From NCBI RefSeq assembly GCF_002571385.2, contig NW_019217849.1:860715-924714 (forward strand): 64,000 nucleotides of DNA, in the 5' to 3' direction. The notes under the pieces were generated by a model that did not search any database, was not told the DNA's origin, and worked only from the letters and a program-made list of their open reading frames with translations. Position numbers and translations under genes: made by a program. Shown here piece by piece: positions 24,279 to 62,562 of the stretch (the first letter of the stretch is position 1; every line of letters starts with the position of its first letter). Source of the DNA: Stylophora pistillata (taxonomy: Eukaryota).

Positions 24279-24593
24279 TCATTTGGCGACGGTTTCAATA
24301 AAGTTGGCTAGTTTCACATCCTTTTCAGACAGTCCCCCACAGTCATGTGTGCTAAGTGTAATCTGTACTTTGTTGTACACGTTGAACCATTCAGGATGAT
24401 GATCCATTTTCTCGGCTTGCAAACCAACACGTGTCATGAAACCAAAAGCTTGATTAAAATCTTTGAAAAGAAATTCTTTGTAAATCGCGTCCCTTCCTTC
24501 TACCTCTGTCCATCCAGATTTGAGTAATGGAGAAAGCATCGAGTTTCTCTCCTCTTCGTCAAGTTTCAGGCGCTTTGAAGCAGGATCAGTCAT
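24279..24593 (-). CDS. PCBD: Pterin-4-alpha-carbinolamine dehydratase (PHS/DCoH)
   Basis: 104 aa; [47 protein letters not shown]; possible acceptor 16 nt upstream of ATG. Confidence 0.95.
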
Positions 24594-25345
24594 GATTTGA
24601 TGAAAACTTCTGCAACGAAAATCAGTGTACGTTGGGTGAACGAAGAATGGTAAACCTTACGTATATCAAACATATTTACTATGGGAGGAGTGGGTTAGTA
24701 ACTAATATTTAACTTTTGGACAGGAATTACGTTATTCCGCGAATACATCCACTTGTGACATGAAAACACACAAAGATATTAATTCAAAGAAAAATTTTAA
24801 ACTTGAATAATATAAATACAGAAAAAAAAGTCGGGCTTCATTCATTTACTGATTGCTACTTTCCCCTCCCCAGAAGAGAAAAATATTTTCATCTTAACTC
24901 TCATGAATATTCCACAAGACTTATAAAAAAACCAATCACGCAAAAAGTACCTTATTTGAGCTTTTCCGCCAAATGTTATTCGCGGATTGTATGAGGGGCC
25001 TTCGTACGAGACGCTTTCCCCCTTATTATTCAAATCTCACCCGTAAAATGGCAAGGTAATCACTCCAAGTGAACCTTCATGGTAATTTCCGAAAATTTCG
25101 CAAACAGAAGAGTCGAGTCTTCGAGTTGAGAAATAATCCAAAAAAGCTTTTACTAGAGATTGTTATGCTCTTCGGAATCTTCAAGTCGCCTTTAATTCCC
25201 CAGCCTCGCTTTGGTGCACAAAACTAGGTTCCAGACTCGGGCGTCTAAACATATAGTGAACCGTGAAGGCCTGAATAGAGTAAAAGTCACTCTCGGACAC
25301 TTTTAAGTTAATGCTCGAGTCTACGCAGTTCGTGAGCAAAATTAA

Positions 25346-28177
25346 ATGAGCGAAATGAATTCTGTTCTCGATTCTTCGGAGGAGAAAACAAATGGTACAA
25401 GGCTGTTACGACTGGTGATTGATGGAGGCACTTACGTTCTGAGAGAGTATTTACAGCGATGTGTTCTTCCGCCTGTAACGCTGCAAGACGTGCTTAACAA
25501 CCACAGAGGAAGGCTTGGGCACTTGAAATCAGTTAAGAAGAAAATTACCGATTTTCAGTGGAATCAGTTATTTCCTTCGACTGGTGACCCACCGGACCCT
25601 CAAACATTTGACATAACTCTTTTGCATCTGTTACTACGAGAAGTTTGCGGTTTGACTGTACCAGTTCCTAATGGATGGCACGAAATACCTATAGATACTG
25701 ATACCAGCGATGAAGCTAACATCGTCCGGATCAAGCTCCTTCGAAACAAGCTGTGTCATGGAAAATCCACCAACATTCCTAATGTCGAATTCCAAGATAA
25801 ATGGCAGACGATTGTTAAGTCATTGGTGGCATTGGGACTCAAACAAGAGGAAGTGGATCGCCTTAAAACTGAGCCTATTGATCATGACACTGAACGTCGA
25901 ATAAACGAAGAAGTAGAGAAGTGGAAAATGGACTTTGAACCACGGGTAGACAAGCTGGAGAATGACTATCTGACAGTAAAAGGAGAAATTTCTGCTATTC
26001 AAGCTTCTATTTCAGAGCAATCCATCAGTGAACATACCAACTGTCTTCCGGATAAGAATGATATCTTTGGACGATCCAAAGAGGTGGAACAAATCCTTAG
26101 TGCCATTCAAACTAAAAAAGCAGCGGCAGTTCTTGTAACTGGGGGACCTGGGTTTGGTAAAACAGCCGTGGCGATCGAAGTGGGTCATGAATTGGCATCC
26201 AACTTAAATGAAGATAGGATAGTTTTGTTTTGCCCCCTCAGATCTAAAGCAACTATTGGTGAAGTAGCCACTTCAATGATCCTTACTTGCAGTACAAGCC
26301 ACTCTCAACCACCAGCACATCCCCAACATTGGCTTCGAAATTGGAGCAAACAACAACAGAAGAAAGTTTTTTTAATTCTAGACAATGCTGATGATGTTTT
26401 AGAATCAGATGACCAAGCTGCATTTGTATCTATTTTAGGAGACATGAGAACTTTATCAAACTGTAAATTAACATTTGTTATCACTACCCGGAAAGTATTT
26501 TATGACCCCAATTTGCCCATGGAACCTGTGAGACTGTGCCCATTATCCCCTGATCATGCTGAAGAACTCCTCCTATCCAAAGTTTGTAATTCAGATGTGA
26601 AGCTGGAGCTCAACAAGACAGATGAATTGGTTCAACTTTGTGGCTGTGTACCTCTGGCCTTGTGTATTGTTGGTTCATTGCTTTCAGACTATCCTGAAGA
26701 TCAGCTCATTAAACGTCTTGAGGAAAAGCCATTGGATGTTCTCAGACAGGATGAAAGTGATACCAATTCTGTTGAAAAAGCAATTGACACTTCTTTCAAC
26801 TTTTTGGATAAAAATGAACAAAAGGCTCTGGTACTTCTGTCAGTTTTTCCTGGCTCATTCAGGAATGATGCTGCCCAAGCTGTTATTCAGGCAGGAGGTT
26901 GTCAAGGTGACCCTATATTCATTCTCCGTTCCTTGAAAAACCGGTCACTCATTGAGACACCAGCTTCATGCAGATATCAAATTCATCAATTTATTCAGAC
27001 ATTTGCAAAGAAGAAGATTGATCAAGCCAAGCATTTTCCATTCTTACAGCTGCAGGGGGAAAAAGTGGCCTGCATCCACTTTTTTTCCTGCCTAGTGGAC
27101 ATTGCCAATCGGTACTGGAGCAAAGACAAGTGCAAAGAGGCAATCCAATTGTTTAACATTGACAGGCACAACTTTGAGTATTTCTTTCAGTTCCTCCAAA
27201 GTCTAAGAAATGAGGATCCTCAAGTAATGGAAACTGTGGAGAAATTAATGAAGAAGATTTCCCAGACATGCATATTTTTAGAAATGTGTGTTCTTCCAGG
27301 TGTTTATATGGGGTACCTTAATGAACTTTGTCAGTTGTTGACATCACGCAAACAATCTGTCACTAAATTAGTGGAACTTTTGTGCCTTTTAGGGCTTGAA
27401 AATAGAAAAATAGGTAATCAAAATGAATACAAGAAGTTGATAGACAAGGCTGCAGACCTACACTCAAAACACTCTGAAGAATTTGACAATGAGAAGGTAT
27501 CAGAGGCTTTTTTTTGCAATAATTATGCAAAGTTCCTCTCTGAAATGAAAAGGTGTTCTGAAGCTGAAAAACAATTCGTTAAAAGTTTGAAGTTGTGTGA
27601 ACAACACATGGATTCTGTACAGAAAGGCATAAGTTTGCTTTATGCTGGACGAAATGACAACTGTCAAAATAAACGTGAGCTGGCAGAGGAAAAGTTCAAT
27701 AAGTCATTACACCTTTTTCAGGAGAATCTTGGCAATCACATTATGACAGCACTGCTTCTGAAGGAAATTGCAGATTTCCACCTCTTCCATGGTGAGAAGG
27801 GTCTAGGATCAGCTGCTGACCAACAAAAATCATTGAAACTTTATGAACAAGCTCTGGAAAGGATGGAAAGTGTTGGTATTAAAGACCAGAAAGAATGCAT
27901 TCTGCCACTCACCAACTTAGGACTGTGTTACCAATTGCAAGGTGAGATGGAAGGTGCAAAAAAATTATATCAAGCATCTCTAAGAATTGCAGAACAAGAG
28001 CTAACTGAGAATCATAGGTGGAAGATCTATGTGATGACTCAAATGGCCTCTTGGTATAAAAAAAATGAAAACCCAGAGAGAGCAATAGAGTTGAAAGAAA
28101 AGGCATTGACAATGAGTGACACACTTCAACTGCCAGATCACCAACCACCCAACAAATTTTTGCTACACAAAATTTGA
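25346..28177 (+). CDS. HEPN(DZIP3-like)-coiled coil-STAND NTPase-TPR protein, copy H1
   Basis: 943-aa single exon; FDITLL and RNKLCH (RxxxxH); FGR, Walker A GGPGFGKT, Walker B LILDNADD, ITTR, CGCVPLAL, IHQ (MHD-like); C-terminal TPR-like helices. Confidence 0.92.
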   Translation: MSEMNSVLDSSEEKTNGTRLLRLVIDGGTYVLREYLQRCVLPPVTLQDVLNNHRGRLGHLKSVKKKITDFQWNQLFPSTGDPPDPQTFDITLLHLLLREVCGLTVPVPNGWHEIPIDTDTSDEANIVRIKLLRNKLCHGKSTNIPNVEFQDKWQTIVKSLVALGLKQEEVDRLKTEPIDHDTERRINEEVEKWKMDFEPRVDKLENDYLTVKGEISAIQASISEQSISEHTNCLPDKNDIFGRSKEVEQILSAIQTKKAAAVLVTGGPGFGKTAVAIEVGHELASNLNEDRIVLFCPLRSKATIGEVATSMILTCSTSHSQPPAHPQHWLRNWSKQQQKKVFLILDNADDVLESDDQAAFVSILGDMRTLSNCKLTFVITTRKVFYDPNLPMEPVRLCPLSPDHAEELLLSKVCNSDVKLELNKTDELVQLCGCVPLALCIVGSLLSDYPEDQLIKRLEEKPLDVLRQDESDTNSVEKAIDTSFNFLDKNEQKALVLLSVFPGSFRNDAAQAVIQAGGCQGDPIFILRSLKNRSLIETPASCRYQIHQFIQTFAKKKIDQAKHFPFLQLQGEKVACIHFFSCLVDIANRYWSKDKCKEAIQLFNIDRHNFEYFFQFLQSLRNEDPQVMETVEKLMKKISQTCIFLEMCVLPGVYMGYLNELCQLLTSRKQSVTKLVELLCLLGLENRKIGNQNEYKKLIDKAADLHSKHSEEFDNEKVSEAFFCNNYAKFLSEMKRCSEAEKQFVKSLKLCEQHMDSVQKGISLLYAGRNDNCQNKRELAEEKFNKSLHLFQENLGNHIMTALLLKEIADFHLFHGEKGLGSAADQQKSLKLYEQALERMESVGIKDQKECILPLTNLGLCYQLQGEMEGAKKLYQASLRIAEQELTENHRWKIYVMTQMASWYKKNENPERAIELKEKALTMSDTLQLPDHQPPNKFLLHKI

Positions 28178-28372
28178 GATTTTAAGAGGTCACAGCCTAG
28201 CCAACTCCAGTGCTCATTTATTGGGGGTAAGTGAAAGAGGAGTACCAAATGACCTTGATTAAGTGCCCACACTCTCATGATCACCCTCCCCCATATAAAA
28301 GCCCACCCCTTAGGTCCTAATATCCAACAAGTGCCCCTCTCAAATAAGCTTACACCCTCCGCACCTCCCTTG

Positions 28373-28668
28373 TGGAGGTGCGGTGGCCTCATGGTTGGTG
28401 CACTCAACTCCGGATCGAGTGGTCCGAGTTCGAGTCCTGGATGGAGATATTGTGTTGTGTTCTTGGGCAAGACACTTTACTCTCACAGTGCCTCTCTTCA
28501 CCCAGGTGTTTAAATGGGTACCAGCAAATTTAATGCCTGGGGGTAACCCTGCGTTGGACTAACGTCCCATCCAGGGGGGAGTAGAAATACTCCTAGTTGC
28601 TTCATGCTACAGAAACCGGAGTTAAGTGCTGGCCTGATGGGCCTCTGGCTCGTAAACAGACTTTACCT
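28373..28668 (+). mobile_element. tRNA-headed SINE
   Basis: A/B-box head GGTGGCCTCATGG...GTTCGAGTCC; body CTTGGGCAAGACACTTTACTCTCACAGTGCCTCTC. Confidence 0.75.
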
Positions 28669-28818
28669 CCTGCTCCCTTACTTTCTAAAAAATAGTTATA
28701 ATAAATGGAAATCCTGTTTCTATTGCCACTTTATTTATAACTTGTTAAGCTTCAATTTCAGTGGTATCAGTACAGTTTCTTTTCCATTAAGTCACTTCCT
28801 GTTATTTCTATCTCCATA

Positions 28819-30401
28819 CAGTCAAACCTCGACTATCGGGACATCAATTATGTGGACTTTTTCTCTGGTCCCAATTTTTTCATGAATATTTATTAGTCAT
28901 GATCATATGGTTAGCCAAATGTTGCAAAATTCAACAACTTGCACATTTTTATTCAACAACTAATATTTATGCTTAACAAAATATATTTTTATTCAACAGT
29001 TTACGGTTATATTCAACATTTTATATTTATGTTCAACGACACGCATTTTCTTTTCATATTCAACCAAAATTATTTTCATTCAACAACAATATTTATTCAA
29101 CTTCAGTCCAAACTTTCTACTCAACAAAAACAATTATTCAACTTCTACCATGCATAGTTATTTAATGACATACCTTCTATTATGACCAAGTGTTCGAAAG
29201 TTCCCGGACATTCAAAATATCGTCATTCAACAAAATTCCCCGCCCCTACCCCCGAACTACCCCCAAACATGAAACCCATTCCTTCCAATACGAAGATTAT
29301 GGTTCATTTGTTTCTCCTGTTTACGCTTGAGGCGCCATGGATGATTTGTTACAACTGCGGGCCTCTTTTTCCCTTGTGAAAAGAAGACGAAGAAGAAGGA
29401 ACCGGGAACGATGCCCGGGGCGATAGAATTTGTCATCTCTCGGCTCGCACATCTTGCTGAACTTGCTATAAGGTCGCGCGTTCTCATTAACAACGAGGTA
29501 TTACTTCCCGATCGTTGAAGAGCGATCTCATTTCGAACACATTCTCCCACAATTTGTGTCAGTTCTTCCCTAACATCTCGCCCTGATCCGTCTTCCGAAA
29601 CCATCTCTATTCATGGGCGTTAATGGTCGGGGCACTGGGTCCGCAATACAGCGTATTTAACTGGGGACTGGACGGGGATTTTGTTGAATGACGATATTTT
29701 GAATGTCCGGGAACTTTCGAACACTTGGTCATATCAGAAGGTATGTCATTAAATAACTATGCTTGGTAGAAGTTGAATAATTGTTTTGTTGAGTAAAAAG
29801 TTTGGACTGAAGTTGAACAATTAATTTTGTTGAGTAAAATAAATATAGCTATTGAAGTTGAATAAATATTGTTGTTGAATGAAAATAATTTTTCTCGAAT
29901 ATGAAAAGAAAATGCGTGTCGTTGAACATAAATATAAAATGTTGAATATAACTGTAAACTGTTGAATAAAAATATATTTTGCTGAGCATAAATATTAGTT
30001 GTTGAATAAAAATATGCAAGTTGTTGAATTTTGCAACATTTGGCTAACCATATGATCAAGATCCATAGCCATATTCTTTTTAAAACTACGACATTGAAAA
30101 GTGAAGTAAAGGCGATGTTCTTCTTTAAGACAGACTGACTGACTTCAACATTTTAGGCCAATGTAAAAACATTTTTCATTAATTTTAATGGTTTATACAT
30201 TTGTGTAGAGGTATTCACATAGGACAGTGAAGATGTAGACCATATTTCTTTCACAATGATTTGTTAATGTCTTGTTTCATGATTTTAAAAATGTTGCTTT
30301 CTTAATTTAATCAGTTTTTGTTCACCATTAATGTTCATATTCTCGATTATCTGGACTATTTCATCTAGTCACAACAAGTTCAGATAATCGAGGTTTGACT
30401 G
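28819..30401. mobile_element. TA-flanked MITE interrupted by the IS3EU-like element
   Basis: TA-CAGTCAAACCTCGA...TCGAGGTTTGACTG-TA; related copy at ~46253-46663. Confidence 0.7.
28906..30052. mobile_element. Non-autonomous element with ~335-bp TIRs (IS3EU-like)
   Basis: TATGG...CCATA termini, 6-bp TSD TGATCA, internal ATTCAAC repeats. Confidence 0.85.
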
Positions 30402-31723
30402 TATTGACTTACATCTATGTGGATAATGTTGTGGTTTATTGTTACCCAAAATACAATTATAGTTTGTTGAAAGGAAAACTTAATAAGTGCCCCCCTTGGT
30501 CAAGCACCTACTTTCCAATAAGCACCCCACCTTTTCAAGGAAATATGGTATGTGGGTTTTAAGACTCAGTGAGGTAACGAGTCCTTCATTTTTCATTCAC
30601 ATAAATGTGAAAATGGTAGTGTTCAAGAAAACCCAAAACAGTTTTCTCCTTTTTGCTAATCCACTTCTTTTAATTTTTTTTTTCGCTGTGGAAATGGTAC
30701 TGGTTTTGATTTTACCCAAACATTATTAACTTAAGTTGGCTCTGAAGATACACAAAAATTTTTTTTTAATAACTTTGCAGAAAGGTTATTCATGGTTAAT
30801 AAATGCTCCTGACCAGTTAAATTCAGTGATGAAAGAAACTAGAAGTTACCTAACTCATTTGTGCCTTATTGAGCATCAAGCCAACACTAAGTGTCTTCTT
30901 AAAACCCTTAAACTCCCATGAGTGACCAAGACAGAATTTCTTCTTACAATAGCAATACAATATCAAGCAGACAATTAATGAGAATAAAGACAAATATCTA
31001 TTAGGGAATTATGATTTGATCCAATACCAAATTCTCTAAAGTAACTTGATAAGAATTATATGGAAGACAGCAAGGAGAATTTCTTAATTAGATCAAGGGA
31101 GTGACAGGGTTGGCATAGTGATCAGGGTGTAGTGATCACGGCATAGTGATCAGGGGGGAGCAGGGTTGGCGTATTGGTGAGTTTCAAGGAAACAAAAGAA
31201 AACTGTGGTAGTATTAACTGATCAATTAACCCAGGATAATTTGTTTTATCAACTGAGTTGATGTTATAAACTGACAACTGTAAAGAGTTTCCAAAGCTTA
31301 CATTTCAAGCGTTCACCCTTCGTCAGAGTGAATGGAATGGACCAATTATTAGAATTGGTTCAACATGATTGTTGTAACATGCTAGGTCTCTTCATCCTTC
31401 AAGTTATTTATACAATTTTATATACTTTTTACTGGCTAGGTTGTACAGCAGTGCTCTTTTAAAGGGTTAAATTTATAGTAAGTTTTACTTTTTTATTGAA
31501 ATTCTGAGATGTGGGGTTGTCATTTGGATCAGACATAAAAATTTGTCATCAAATGAAAATTAAATTTACCTAACTTGGTCAGTAACTGCTGATGTTGCTG
31601 GTTCTAATAGTAATAGTTGTTACTCTCACTTTATGTTAGGGTTGTGGTGTAGTAGAATCAGGGATCTGCAAATTTCCTTCATTTGTGCAGCTGCAGAGAA
31701 TATCTGTACCATCCTGTGTTAAT

Positions 31724-32429
31724 AGGGACCTTAAGCAAACCATGACAGTGATGGCAACAAGCACATGGCTAAACAAAAGATCTCACAGGTGTGGCTCAGC
31801 ACATGTGTTTTGAAACTTTGTACATTTCTTTGCTCCGCAAAACAACAATGTGAAATCACCAAATTTGTGTTGTCTGGGAATGGAAACCCAGAGAGCAAAT
31901 CAATTAAGCTTCCATTTAAAACCCAACGCTGCTTCCATACATTATGCTAAAGGTCTGGTGTAGAGGAAAAGGAGACAATCAACATATCCAGCCATTTGCA
32001 AAATTCTAACTGAAAGTATAAATTCTGTTCTTAATCGAGGTCTTCTTCAGCATTGCCTTCCTGGCTGCTTAAGGTCCCTAATATTAGGGACCTTAAGCAA
32101 ACCACGACAGCGACTACAAAGATGACGTGGAAAAACAAAAGATCTAATTGGCATAACAATTGCTCAGCACGTGCATTTTAAAACTTAGTACATTTCTTAG
32201 CACTCCTTTGCTAAACAACAACATGAATTCATCAAAACTATGACAGCAAATTTTTGAATTTCCATTTGGAACTCAATGCTACTTTTATATGTTATGTTGA
32301 GGTTGGGTTTTGGCACTGTATGAAATGATAAACACATGCAGCCATTTTTGAAATTCTAATTAAAAGTAGAAATTCATTTTTAAATCGGCGTCTTCCTTAG
32401 CGTTGCCGTCCTGACTGCTTAAGGTCCCT
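31724..32429. mobile_element. Two adjacent MITEs of one family (31724-32079, 32086-32429)
   Basis: TIR AGGGACCTTAAGCA...TGCTTAAGGTCCCT in both. Confidence 0.8.
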
Positions 32430-33492
32430 AATATTGAGAGGGACATGGTAGATGTATTATTTTAAGTGCAGTTTACTTGTAGAATATTTAATTTATTGAT
32501 GTGAAATGCAAGTTTAAAAAATTTAGCCTTCGATCCTAAGCTTTCTTATCTAGTTCTCAAATTTTTATACAAATTTGTATTTTATCTGTTTTAAAGGGAC
32601 ATTTTTTAAGTTTGATTTTATTACGGTAGTAGCTAGTATTGAAATAATACAGAAAGGAGTTGAAATGAAACAATTAGGTAAGTTACTACTGGTCAGTTAA
32701 TCTGTCAATCAATTGGAAACTTCAACATCCCTCCCCCCTGGGCAACCCCCAAGGCATTTGAACTTTTGAAGATTGGTTTGTTCAAAACTCATGCCCCTAG
32801 AGTAAAAATTGTGTTTAAATGCCCCACCCAATTTATGTGTGAACGGCAAAATCAGTGACCATCACTTTCTACACATTGACCAAGCTTTAAAACTTAGTCC
32901 TTGAAGACCTTCTCTTCTGAACCATTTGCTCACAAAAATGAACTGTCTACCTTGAACGCCTGCCATTTTCAAGAAATAACACTTGTATTCCACTGAGGCA
33001 CCCCCTGAATATGGTTAAAAGTCCACAGCATCCCGGGGGGGTTGTGGGGGGGGGATGTTGAAGCTTCAAGTTATAAGCACATGACTCCTGCATTAACCTC
33101 ATATGCCTTAACTTCAGTCTGCATATTCTCAAATTTAATCTTCTCTATAAATTAATTTTCATATTGACAAGAATTAATTTGTTTGACAACCAATAGCTTC
33201 TTTAGCTGTCAATCATTTCCTTTATTCTCACGACCTCAGTGTTTGCTTCACCAGTCATAGTGCAAAGAGAAACTAGATGCTGGTCAACCTTAGGGATTAA
33301 AGGATTTAATATCTTAATCCAACTTATGTTCTGTTTCAAAAAATATCCTTTACAGAAGTAAGGCAATAACATTTTGGTTAGGTTGTCTGTTGGTGGAGAT
33401 TATTTGTCATTTATGAGGCTCTTGAGCCTGCCTTTGACCTGTACCCCTTTAACTCCCATGAGTGAGCAAGACAATTTCTCCTTTTGATATCA

Positions 33493-33493
33493 A

Positions 33494-33533
<40 letters not shown>
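33493..33533. repeat. (AAT)n microsatellite inside a MITE
   Basis: ~13 AAT units. Confidence 0.9.
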
Positions 33534-35288
33534 TCAAAACAGTATCTAGCAGATAAGTGATGAGAATAAAGAAAAATACCAAATAGGGGATTATTAGTTG
33601 ATTCAATACCAAAATTTCCAAAATAACATAAAAAAACTGTATGGCAGAGAGTAAAGAGAATTTCTGTTGAGATCTTAGAAGTTAAAGAGTAATATGTTTC
33701 TTAATGTGTATTGAGAGTTTCCCAGAAATATCCATATCTTTCTTTTGAAGTGGGTCAGCAGAAATTCCAACAGGATTATAAACAGATGAGCTGTAGGAAA
33801 CCAAGAGACTTTAATGTTGAATGACAAGAAAAAAGACTGAAATTTGTGATAGGTGAAAGTTCTCAAAAGGCCTGAAACCTCTATGGAAAGATTATGGATA
33901 TTTTCTAGGAATTAATAAATGTAAATCTTCCAGGAGACCAAACTACCTTAAATGCTCTCTTTGACTCACATTCCAACATCACGAAAAAAGAAACTGGTAT
34001 AGAGCTTTTGCTTGGCAGCCACGTTGCATGGCAGGAACAATGAAAATATTTTGCATAAGAAAGAGAATTTTTTCCCATGGGAAAATAATCTATTGTTCCT
34101 GCCATGCAACATGGCTGCTGTGCAAAACCTCTATAGTGTAGTGTTTATGCCTAAATTTGTATGTGTTTGTAAAGTGTGGAAAATGTAATAAATTCTGTAA
34201 GAACAATCTTTATATTTTTGATTGCTTTTTCCAGATATAGTGATTGATAGCCCAGTAAATTGCATTTACACTGTCTAAAAGTTTATTGTACATCTGAATC
34301 TATTTGTGATGTTTGAGAAATGTACAATGAAAGTCTTAGGACAACATCCCTGCGTGGGCTCTTTAATTAAACATGTAGACTATGAGTAGTCTGTCCTTGT
34401 CAGCAAAGTTTGTGGTGCAAATAAAAAAAAATCAATGACAACAAAAATTGATGCTAGCACCCTATGAGAAGCTCTTGAAGTGAAAAAAAATTTCTCAAAG
34501 AAATTTACTTTGCTGTGCCTCTCACGCAGACATGAGTTTAGTGATCCCATCTTTTTTTTCAGCCAGTCTTACAGCAGTTAATTTATCTGGATTCACTTTT
34601 CTGAAAAGCAAGTTTTAAAAAATTTTTTACTGTATGTTCAAAGCTGTCTCAATTTCAAGACAATTAGAATCAATTCCATCAAACTAGTCTGTGGGTTGCA
34701 GTCACAAAAAACTACAGTTAATGGTGTGCTAAGAAGCTATAATATTGCTATGGCAACTTCTTGGGGTTATATAGAAAATAGGATTACAGTATATAGAGAG
34801 AAAACTCAAATTTCTACTGTTTAGAAGAAAAAAATAAAAAATTGTACTGATACCAATCCTTTCATGTATATTTTGTAAAAAATGAAGGAAACTTTTTTGA
34901 GTGTTCTTAATCACGTTTTGACGTATATGGCTCTAGACTCTTGGTTAGTAGCAGTGAGCTCAGGAAAGATTGAGAAGGAGGAATCATTGCCCCTCTAACT
35001 CTTTGCCCCCATACTTATTTCCTGTGCACCCAACCACTGTAATATTTAAAAGCACCAAGAACAGGCTAGCCACCTCGTAAAATCTTAACCCTTTAATAAC
35101 TCCCAGGAGTGATTCACTTGTAACTTCTCCCTTTAATGTCCATACATTATCCAGAAATAAGGTAATAAGAGCTAGTACTCATTTCAGTATTTAGGTATCT
35201 AATACCAAATTCTTGTCACTAATTAACAAGGAAACATGTAGCAGCCAGAGGGGAGAATCAACAATCAGATCTTGGTTAAGTTGAAGGG

Positions 35289-62562: not shown

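Follow-up and report, generated by a model that had tools for sequence, protein, structure and literature searches.

In a 64,000-nucleotide stretch of the Stylophora pistillata genome (contig NW_019217849.1, positions 860,715 to 924,714 of the forward strand; hereafter the window) we identified a cluster of four intact genes, H1 to H4, that encode proteins of about 940 amino acids, each comprised of an N-terminal DZIP3-type HEPN domain, a coiled coil, a STAND NTPase of the NB-ARC type and a C-terminal TPR solenoid. We regard this architecture and the family assignment as practically certain. The overall explanation that we lean towards, with a confidence slightly better than even, is that the four genes are expressed or expressible paralogues within a family of cytosolic STAND receptors known from cnidarians and molluscs and act as gated RNases. 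A role in immunity or conflict is somewhat more likely than not, and the ligand-gated RNase mechanism taken by itself is plausible, with even chances, and is not new.

Gene cluster and neighbouring sequence

The four open reading frames and the conserved region upstream of H1 occupy the following positions in the window.

25346..28177, + strand: H1 (gene 1), single-exon coding sequence of 943 aa with HEPN_DZIP3, coiled coil, NB-ARC and TPR
35289..38120, - strand: H2 (gene 2), open reading frame of 943 codons, RNKLCH at 37713-37730
42472..45273, + strand: H3 (gene 3), 933 aa, RNELCH at 42826-42843
59737..62562, - strand: H4 (gene 4), 941 aa, RNKLCH at 62161-62178
25256..25345, + strand: ~90 bp upstream of H1, conserved with the region upstream of H2 (38209-38121)

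H2, H3 and H4 share 71-79% identity with H1, the most divergent copy being H3, which has a HEPN loop shortened by 12 residues. The initial annotation had proposed four intact, intronless frames of ~940 aa. The frames stand as annotated, with lengths of 933-943 aa and unchanged coordinates, and the term intronless holds for the coding sequence, as RNA contigs span all of the H1 frame without a joint. The H2 frame as listed begins with GTG, and its usable ATG is codon 4 (38111), in agreement with the start of H4 and with the public model of H1, which begins at codon 4 (25355). The ~90 bp conserved upstream of H1 likely represent, as tentatively judged from the conservation between two copies, a 5'UTR or a core promoter. 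One RNA contig runs into sequencing adapter at 25270, where the H1 transcript may start.

Three of the four genes have public models (P0001 for H1, P0028 for H3 and P0024 for H4), all of which are named 'E3 ubiquitin-protein ligase DZIP3'. The Pfam matches of the four ORFs include no RING, zinc-finger or other ligase domain, and identity as E3 ubiquitin ligases was rejected for want of a RING-H2 finger in any of them. Because the RING domain is missing, the public name misdescribes these genes and is a misnomer by transfer. Reading them by this name risks a wrong functional interpretation; in a Nematostella paper, a 'DZIP3' gene was the most down-regulated one under antibiotics and was read through the vertebrate name.

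The assembly gap at 52544-52972 is intergenic, located between genes 3 and 4 at distances of 7.3 kb and 6.8 kb, respectively, and is adjoined by a tandem array of tRNA-Thr genes with a 245-bp period. Since the gap is located outside all ORFs, the continuity and reading frames of the four genes are unaffected. No fifth copy or pseudogene near the gap was found by tblastn with H1, which matches the four ORFs only. We also rejected a functional link to the adjacent TPR-CHAT gene, whose adjacency is expected by chance given the at least 134 dispersed copies of that family.

Domain architecture and predicted structure

The features of H1, taken as the reference copy, are as follows.

25475..25900, + strand: HEPN domain (DZIP3/hRUL138 type), residues 44-185
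25742..25759, + strand: RNKLCH (Rx4H) motif, R133-H138, in the predicted dimer interface
25883..26038, + strand: long helix, residues 180-231, predicted parallel coiled-coil linker
26066..27025, + strand: NB-ARC STAND module (NBD, HD1, WHD), residues 241-560, Walker A at 26141-26164
27038..28174, + strand: all-helical TPR-like solenoid, putative sensor, residues 565-943

The HEPN_DZIP3 family (PF18738) matches all four ORFs in Pfam with E-values of 5e-30 to 2e-49 and scores of 105-168 bits (cut-off 27) over at least 140 of the 144 profile positions. The Rx4-6H motif with a polar residue after the arginine is present in each, as RNKLCH in three copies and RNELCH in one, at exactly the positions that had been annotated. 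Its conservation, on which the initial annotation had staked its reading of an RNase receptor, was confirmed in the paralogues and in ~70 of 73 full-length relatives; among 30 diverse DZIP3-type HEPN domains RNxxxH is kept in 25, and the remaining five have lost the histidine or the whole motif. Sequence and profile searches of the PDB returned no solved structure of a DZIP3-type HEPN. The N-terminus is modelled as a helical bundle that appears HEPN-like.

Modelled as a homodimer, residues 1-240 score 0.65, as compared with 0.23 for the best control; in a calibration set of mostly microbial proteins, this mark was attained by 21 of the 30 that had been solved as pairs and by none of the 23 solved as single chains. 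The runs share at least 87% of contacts, with pLDDT of at least 82. The predicted interface is symmetric, contains the Rx4H motif and includes residues 133-134 and 136-143 of both copies as well as the coiled coil. The latter is suggested by contacts at a 3-4-residue spacing along residues 176-222 of the dimer model, and a PDB profile search over the linker matches coiled coils only; in the full-length model this helix has low pLDDT. The success of the dimer model may reflect its memory of solved HEPN dimers.

The NTPase belongs, as judged by sequence profiles, to the NB-ARC/AP-ATPase clade. NB-ARC (PF00931) scores 31-39 bits in the four ORFs (cut-off 23.5), and NACHT scores of 26-32 bits are near the cut-off of 26.7 and below those of NB-ARC. 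The Walker A motif GGPG(F/Y)GKT is present in all four. Across 38 aligned sequences, with identities as low as 25%, residues G266, G269, G271, K272, D346 (Walker B), R382 (sensor-1), A438 (GLPL-like) and H547 (MHD-like) do not vary. The C-terminal repeats match TPR_12 (E-values of 1e-19 to 4e-22 in the four ORFs), and no LRR was found among the Pfam matches of these ORFs. The proteins are thus not canonical animal NLRs of the NACHT-LRR type, as the NACHT score is marginal and TPRs take the place of LRRs. The predicted structure (AF2, full-length, pLDDT 84) matches the fold NBD-HD1-WHD followed by a repeat sensor: the best Foldseek match is the archaeal NB-ARC-TPR STAND protein 6mfv (E-value 7e-15), followed by Apaf-1 (1e-9) and then by the plant resistosomes NRC and ZAR1 and by CED-4. 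The domain order that had been annotated (HEPN, coiled coil, STAND, TPR) is correct.

In relatives that share the NB-ARC-TPR core, the N-terminal slot is taken by DUF4559 (PF15112). We take this domain to be the CXorf38-type HEPN family, and if so, the slot is an exchangeable effector position. Fusions of the CXorf38-type HEPN to NACHT NTPases in cnidarians were reported in the 2013 survey (PMC3710099).

Selection, expression and genome-wide expansion

Pairwise comparison of the cluster paralogues gives an overall dN/dS of 0.32-0.40, with about 0.3-0.4 in every domain (HEPN 0.27-0.41); no positive selection was seen, the pairwise values being at most 0.67 in any domain. By this measure all domains are under purifying selection. 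The dN values are highest in the TPR solenoid and the HEPN domain, so that the description of the TPR C-terminus as variable applies relative to NB-ARC, and not relative to HEPN, which is about equally variable.

PolyA RNA-seq contigs cover the H1 ORF without splice joints, and some flanking bins are empty. We regard these contigs as signs of transcription, although, the coding sequence being unspliced, DNA carry-over in the libraries is not fully excludable.

The S. pistillata genome has at least 150 HEPN_DZIP3 matches, and more clusters of the H1-H4 subfamily are found on five other contigs, some of the copies having stop codons. The expansion and the stop-bearing copies constitute birth-and-death dynamics. 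The four genes belong to a lineage-specific expansion with multiple clusters and signs of mosaic gene conversion.

Proposed mechanism and alternative explanations

In the proposed mechanism, the TPR solenoid would bind a non-self or danger ligand, which would release autoinhibition and allow ADP/ATP exchange and oligomerisation of the NB-ARC module. Oligomerisation would pair or re-orient the HEPN domains, bringing two Rx4H motifs together into a composite RNase site, and the cleavage of cellular and/or viral RNA at this site would arrest translation or kill the cell with no need for a death-fold adaptor. A point against this mechanism is that, if the coiled coil dimerises constitutively, a further step of autoinhibition would be required. 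That the proteins are fully self-contained receptors, in which oligomerisation of the NB-ARC-TPR sensor switches on the HEPN RNase fused to it and the cell is shut down or killed with neither a death-fold adaptor nor a caspase, is a tentative proposal that we rate a little short of even. Such receptors would represent in animals the principle by which bacterial Avs proteins and enzyme-bearing plant NLRs fuse an effector to a STAND module. Related paralogues that lack the HEPN could serve as their regulators or partners.

It is possible, though unlikely, that the HEPN domain is not a nuclease but an RNA sensor or tether, or a homotypic scaffold, and that signalling proceeds via other partners. 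The N-terminal region of human DZIP3/hRUL138 has been described as RNA-binding. The same term is applied to the domain in one coral paper, and our literature search found no functional study or RNase assay of any DZIP3-type HEPN, invertebrates included, which agrees with the original remark that no functional characterisation in animals was known. The 2013 survey (PMC3710099) lists the motif as only 'mostly conserved'; the five motif-deficient domains mentioned above also favour this alternative. What argues for catalysis is that the form R-N-x3-H, typical of active HEPNs, is found in all four genes and nearly all close relatives and is under purifying selection; the motif is also placed by the model at the dimer interface, as in active HEPN dimers, and the domain occupies the N-terminal position, the usual effector slot of STAND proteins. 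A gated RNase or STAND switch could also operate outside anti-pathogen immunity, in allorecognition between colonies, in control of the dinoflagellate symbiont or in stress-triggered cell death, a reading to which we assign a low probability. The lineage-specific expansion, the tandem clusters and the mosaic gene conversion would suit allorecognition loci just as well, and we found no pathogen-induction data. In fungi, NB-ARC/NACHT-TPR proteins have a role in heterokaryon incompatibility, and the clusters nearest to the coral proteins in feature space include fungal NB-ARC-TPR proteins. No finding speaks directly against such a role; the published surveys favour pathogen sensing by analogy only.

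The four ORFs might, finally, be decaying or selfish intronless retro-copies with no host function, as would suit their intronless coding sequences, the loss of similarity between copies within ~30-90 bp of the ORF ends and the stop codons in copies of other subfamily clusters. This account is very improbable and already largely refuted: frames of ~2.8 kb are intact in all four genes despite dS of 0.2-0.5 between copies, every domain has the low dN/dS given above, all catalytic and NTPase motifs are kept, polyA RNA contigs cover H1, and Acropora as well as metagenomes from coral samples contain full-length relatives.

Significance

HEPN-STAND NTPase fusions are among the commonest NLR-like architectures in corals and bivalves, and our literature search found a biochemical test of none of them. 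If their HEPN domain is a STAND-gated RNase, early-branching animals use direct effector-fused immune receptors, as bacteria and plants do. Studies of coral disease and bleaching would then gain a measurable pathway of cell death or translation arrest. The cluster provides four compact, intronless and intact genes that are easily cloned for an RNase test.

Comparison with known systems

Vertebrate DZIP3/hRUL138 shares with the coral proteins only the N-terminal HEPN family (PF18738) and has neither a STAND nor a TPR module. SAMD9 and SAMD9L, whose effector is a tRNA-cleaving nuclease, are animal antiviral factors that likewise combine a STAND-like NTPase with a TPR region, but their effector domain and overall architecture are unrelated, and no sequence similarity of the coral ORFs to them was detected. 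Their sensor clusters with the sensor of bacterial Avs5 (PMC13581612; see also PMC12680541). RNase L and Ire1 (KEN-type) are animal HEPN RNases that become active when a ligand causes an upstream sensor module to dimerise or oligomerise, an analogy drawn in the 2013 survey (PMC3710099). They differ in belonging to another HEPN family, in the C-terminal position of the HEPN domain and in their sensors, which are ankyrin/pseudokinase or lumenal domain/kinase in contrast to STAND-TPR.

The initial annotation had presented the cluster as a counterpart of bacterial Avs, which holds as an analogy of architecture only. In both, a nuclease-type effector at the N-terminus is combined with a STAND NTPase and a sensor of TPR-like type, and Avs3 (8dgc) is retrieved by Foldseek (E-value 4e-7, rank 22) through the shared STAND core. 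However, the coral NTPase is of the NB-ARC/AP-ATPase type, and the range of DZIP3-type HEPNs is reported as eukaryotic in the 2013 survey (PMC3710099), with which the atlas clusters agree. Membership in the Avs families was rejected, as the search with the PADLOC defence models gave weak matches to generic P-loop and TPR models only and none to an Avs model. The best structural and sequence matches over residues ~190-930 are the archaeal and bacterial NB-ARC-TPR STAND proteins (Pyrococcus PH0952, PDB 6mfv; AfsR; HaaT; FxSxx TPR), which have the same NBD-HD1-WHD-TPR layout. Unlike the coral proteins, they have no HEPN effector, and AfsR, which regulates transcription, has a DNA-binding SARP domain.

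The closest known systems are the published NLR-like proteins of cnidarians and molluscs, and here the novelty claimed initially was overstated. HEPN-NACHT/NB-ARC fusions in these animals, the hypothesis of an immune RNase and the likeness to bacterial HEPN-STAND proteins and RNase L were already published by Anantharaman 2013 (PMC3710099), Emery 2021 (PMC8260672), Takeuchi 2022 (PMC9646362) and Noel 2023 (PMC10236652), the last of which takes in corals, Pocilloporidae included. The published proteins have the N-terminal PF18738 HEPN with Rx4-6H, a STAND NTPase and, on the NB-ARC forms, TPRs; the gene families are expanded, with tandem clusters, and the proteins have been proposed to act as immune RNases. 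We see no essential difference from H1-H4. The published accounts are domain counts without biochemistry. What is new here is one previously undescribed four-gene cluster of an intronless ~940-aa subfamily, the kind itself being known.

Architecture of the four genes

The window contains five ORFs longer than 300 aa, four of which form the cluster (genes 1-4, numbered from left to right).

Coding sequences of the cluster
25346-28177, plus strand, gene 1, 943 aa
35289-38120, minus strand, gene 2, 943 aa
42472-45273, plus strand, gene 3, 933 aa
59737-62562, minus strand, gene 4, 941 aa

The proteins of genes 2-4 align end to end with that of gene 1 at 71-79% identity, and a tblastn search of the window with gene 1 gave no extra copy or fragment beyond the four ORFs. 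For gene 2, the mechanical ORF list gives a GTG start; translation can begin at the ATG of codon 4 (38111), in line with where gene 4 and the public gene 1 model start. All four genes have the same domain architecture with intact motifs. In Pfam, each ORF matches HEPN_DZIP3 (PF18738; E 5e-30 to 2e-49, with the profile covered almost entirely), NB-ARC (31-39 bits, cut-off 23.5) and, at the C-terminus, TPR_12 (E 1e-19 to 4e-22). The Walker A motif GGPG(F/Y)GKT is present in each of them, and the arginine of the RxxxxH motif is R133, R131, R119 and R129 in the proteins of genes 1, 2, 3 and 4, respectively. The initial annotation had reported four intact ORFs, as the ORF listing and the alignment confirm, and its coordinates for RxxxxH are exact in all four genes. 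Also named alongside these domains are a Cas nuclease-crRNA complex, Roquin, AbiF, HepS, AF0298, Swt1, RnlA and SO_3166.

Gene models, naming and expression

Over 862 residues, the gene 1 protein matches the public entry 'E3 ubiquitin-protein ligase DZIP3 [Stylophora pistillata]' at 100% identity. Since the Pfam scan of the ORFs found no RING or other ligase domain, this name is a misnomer for these genes, carried over from the shared HEPN domain. The public models P0028 and P0024 stand at zero tree distance from genes 3 and 4, respectively, and no public model pairs with gene 2 in the same tree. Compared over 25346-28177, the public model of gene 1 (P0001) departs from the ORF by a splice at residue 865, after which it continues with 113 unrelated residues. 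The single-exon ORF is preferable to this model, because its own C-terminus is common to the four paralogues and the Acropora relatives, and because RNA contigs are unspliced across the exit point of P0001 (records spanning 27624-28049).

The gene 1 ORF is covered piece by piece by polyA RNA-seq contigs (three runs, one study), with some flanking bins at zero depth; the contigs have no joint inside the ORF, in keeping with the genes having been described as intronless. The same libraries hold a spliced transcript just upstream, which demonstrates that real RNA is present in them.

Transcript upstream of gene 1
24177-25180, minus strand, spliced transcript in three runs, intron 24610-24950 (GT..AG on the minus strand)

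It is divergent from gene 1, whose ATG lies ~170 bp past its upstream end. Transcription of gene 1 is likely, short of proof because the coding sequence is unspliced and the data are stored as contigs. One RNA contig is ended by a sequencing adapter at 25270, close to 25256 where the similarity between genes 1 and 2 begins, so that 25270 is a possible transcript start.

Directly 3' of gene 1, the segment 28328-28721 has a word depth of ~2,000-20,000 in four runs, versus tens to hundreds elsewhere, and represents either a repeat or a mobile element, abundant and transcribed.

Predicted structure and mechanism

The full-length model of the gene 1 protein (pLDDT 84; residue numbers below refer to this protein) comprises an NBD (~240-400), HD1 (~402-460), WHD (~477-560) and an all-helical solenoid (565-943). 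Its top structural match is the archaeal NB-ARC-TPR STAND protein 6mfv (E 7e-15), followed by Apaf-1, plant resistosomes and CED-4, with Avs3 at rank 22; sequence searches concur, returning AfsR, HaaT, FxSxx TPR proteins and plant ADR2. In a 38-sequence alignment extending down to 25% identity, the P-loop residues G266, G269, G271 and K272, Walker B D346, sensor-1 R382, the GLPL-like A438 and the MHD-like H547 are invariant, and the predicted NTPase switch therefore looks competent.

For residues 1-240, a homodimer prediction passed its controls, scoring 0.65 against 0.23 for the best of them. Of 30 proteins solved as pairs, 21 attained this mark, whereas none of 23 solved as single chains did. 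The pass may stem from solved HEPN dimers that the model remembers, and it says nothing of activity. At least 87% of contacts agree between runs, and pLDDT is at least 82. The predicted symmetric interface brings together residues 133-134 and 136-143 of both copies, the arrangement expected of a composite HEPN active site. Its further contacts recur every 3-4 residues along 176-222, a spacing that indicates a parallel coiled coil in the predicted dimer.

For genes 1-4 we infer ligand gating, RNase activity and an immune role: the TPR solenoid would sense a ligand, NB-ARC would exchange nucleotide and oligomerise, and HEPN pairs would then become active and cut RNA.

Conservation and history of the copies

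Among 73 full-length relatives (at least 54% identity), RNxxxH followed by ST is kept in ~70, Walker A in all 73 and the Walker B pattern [ILVF]{2,3}DN[AV]DD in 68. The HEPN motif is also kept in 25 of 30 diverse DZIP3-type HEPN domains, in agreement with the 2013 HEPN survey, which rates it 'mostly conserved' (PMC3710099).

Overall pairwise dN/dS among genes 1-4 is 0.32-0.40, and the HEPN domain gives 0.27-0.41, with dS of 0.2-0.5; the genes are old duplicates under constraint in every domain. NB-ARC has the lowest dN (0.05-0.12), and the top values occur in residues 561-850, at up to 0.30, and in the HEPN domain, at up to 0.25. The TPR-like C-terminus is thus variable, as initially described, but the HEPN domain is about equally so by dN. 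The copies are related in a mosaic pattern: genes 1 and 2 share codons 186-240 without a difference, and within 701-850 genes 2 and 4 are near-identical (dS 0.10), while gene 1 has gene 3, not gene 2, as its nearer relative there. Such a mosaic points to gene conversion. In the tree, gene 1, gene 3, the pair of genes 2 and 4, and a 23-sequence clade form an unresolved fork, and the one located member of that clade comes from a Tara coral-sample metagenome; the array would therefore be roughly as old as the split from this clade.

Relatives and neighbourhood of the cluster

The genome has at least 150 HEPN_DZIP3 matches, mostly in open frames of 230-280 aa, which are single exons of other architectures. 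More clusters of the intronless ~940-aa subfamily occur on contigs C93, C779, C2277, C887 and C1300; their copies are 41-50% identical to gene 1, several have stop codons, and the subfamily undergoes birth-and-death evolution. Some relatives with the same NB-ARC-TPR core have DUF4559 (PF15112) in the N-terminal slot, and 2 of the 10 scanned proteins gave weak HEPN_Swt1 matches. We take DUF4559 to be the CXorf38-type HEPN family; if this is right, the same position is held by two HEPN families. Many other close relatives (72-75% identical) have neither the HEPN domain nor most of the coiled coil. On Tara metagenome scaffolds such paralogues are 73-75% identical to gene 1, with homology from residue 218 on and no HEPN remnant upstream.

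HEPN-less paralogue
L001 (Tara Pacific scaffold) 2507-4726, with relatives of 734-739 aa among proteins P0032-P0120

No HEPN remnant was found in the 2.5 kb upstream of the L001 gene. These HEPN-less relatives may be natural sensor-only or regulatory paralogues.

Similarity between genes 1-4 stops 30-90 bp or less from the ORFs. Between the end of gene 3 (45273) and the 3' end of gene 4 (59737) lie a run of N (52544-52972) and a single N (58415). The right side of the gap adjoins 4.8 copies of a 245-bp unit, 99% identical, each carrying one tRNA-Thr(AGT) gene.

tRNA-Thr(AGT) genes in the window
52973-54161, tandem array of five genes, 99% identical, 245-bp period
1714-1786, 19545-19617 and 19838-19910, three further copies

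On the simplest reading, the gap probably conceals more units of this array; because no family-like sequence lies outside the four ORFs, it is irrelevant to their continuity and reading frame.

Several neighbouring features were recorded. An intact single-exon ORF at 10295-13381 (plus strand, 1028 aa) encodes about ten TPRs, with internal DNA repeats ~120 nt apart, followed at the C-terminus by CHAT, a caspase-like protease domain (E 1e-57). At least 134 matches to its CHAT part are dispersed across the genome, a good number of them in long open frames, which marks TPR-CHAT as a second very large lineage-specific expansion; this ORF seems to lie beside the HEPN cluster by chance. An open frame at 55745-56176 (plus strand), between genes 3 and 4, matches the MCM P-loop domain (E 2e-34) and is probably a single exon of an MCM helicase gene with several exons. 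The ORF at 21312-21863 (plus strand) encodes a domain of the PPC/PCC family (PF03479), which takes its name from plants and prokaryotes. This ORF is probably a single exon of a gene conserved in corals, since its relatives in Desmophyllum and Montipora span about half its length. A direct duplicate of ~0.9 kb, 86% identical, occupies 49723-50607, 4.4 kb downstream of gene 3, and 62810-63690, immediately upstream of gene 4.

Comparison with known systems

Fusions of DZIP3/hRUL138 HEPN to TPR, NACHT, Death and other domains, expanded in Nematostella and oyster, were described in 2013, as were cnidarian fusions of CXorf38-type HEPN domains to NACHT NTPases, which the same survey likens to bacterial HEPN-STAND proteins and RNase L (PMC3710099). 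DZIP3-type HEPN is the commonest non-LRR NACHT partner in most of 15 cnidarians, with 17-83 such HEPN-NACHT proteins per anthozoan species (PMC8260672, 2021); the pearl oyster genome has more than 50 HEPN-NACHT genes, with Rx4-6H in 194 of 202 HEPN proteins (PMC9646362, 2022); and coral NB-ARC proteins mostly have TPRs, many with an N-terminal DZIP3-like HEPN (PMC10236652, 2023). A gated-RNase immune receptor is a reasonable reading, but not a new idea, being already a published hypothesis. Our literature search found no functional assay of DZIP3-type HEPN fusions, as the initial annotation had supposed.

PADLOC defence models, Avs included, gave nothing past weak P-loop and TPR matches, so that the proposed animal counterpart of bacterial Avs is not supported as family membership. 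Judged by the 2013 survey and by atlas clusters, DZIP3-type HEPN looks eukaryotic. The locus is a clean, previously undescribed example of a known, biochemically uncharacterised protein type, and its worth is as a source of four compact genes that can be cloned for a first biochemical test, rather than as a surprise. Bacterial Avs proteins resemble genes 1-4 in design, but not in family.
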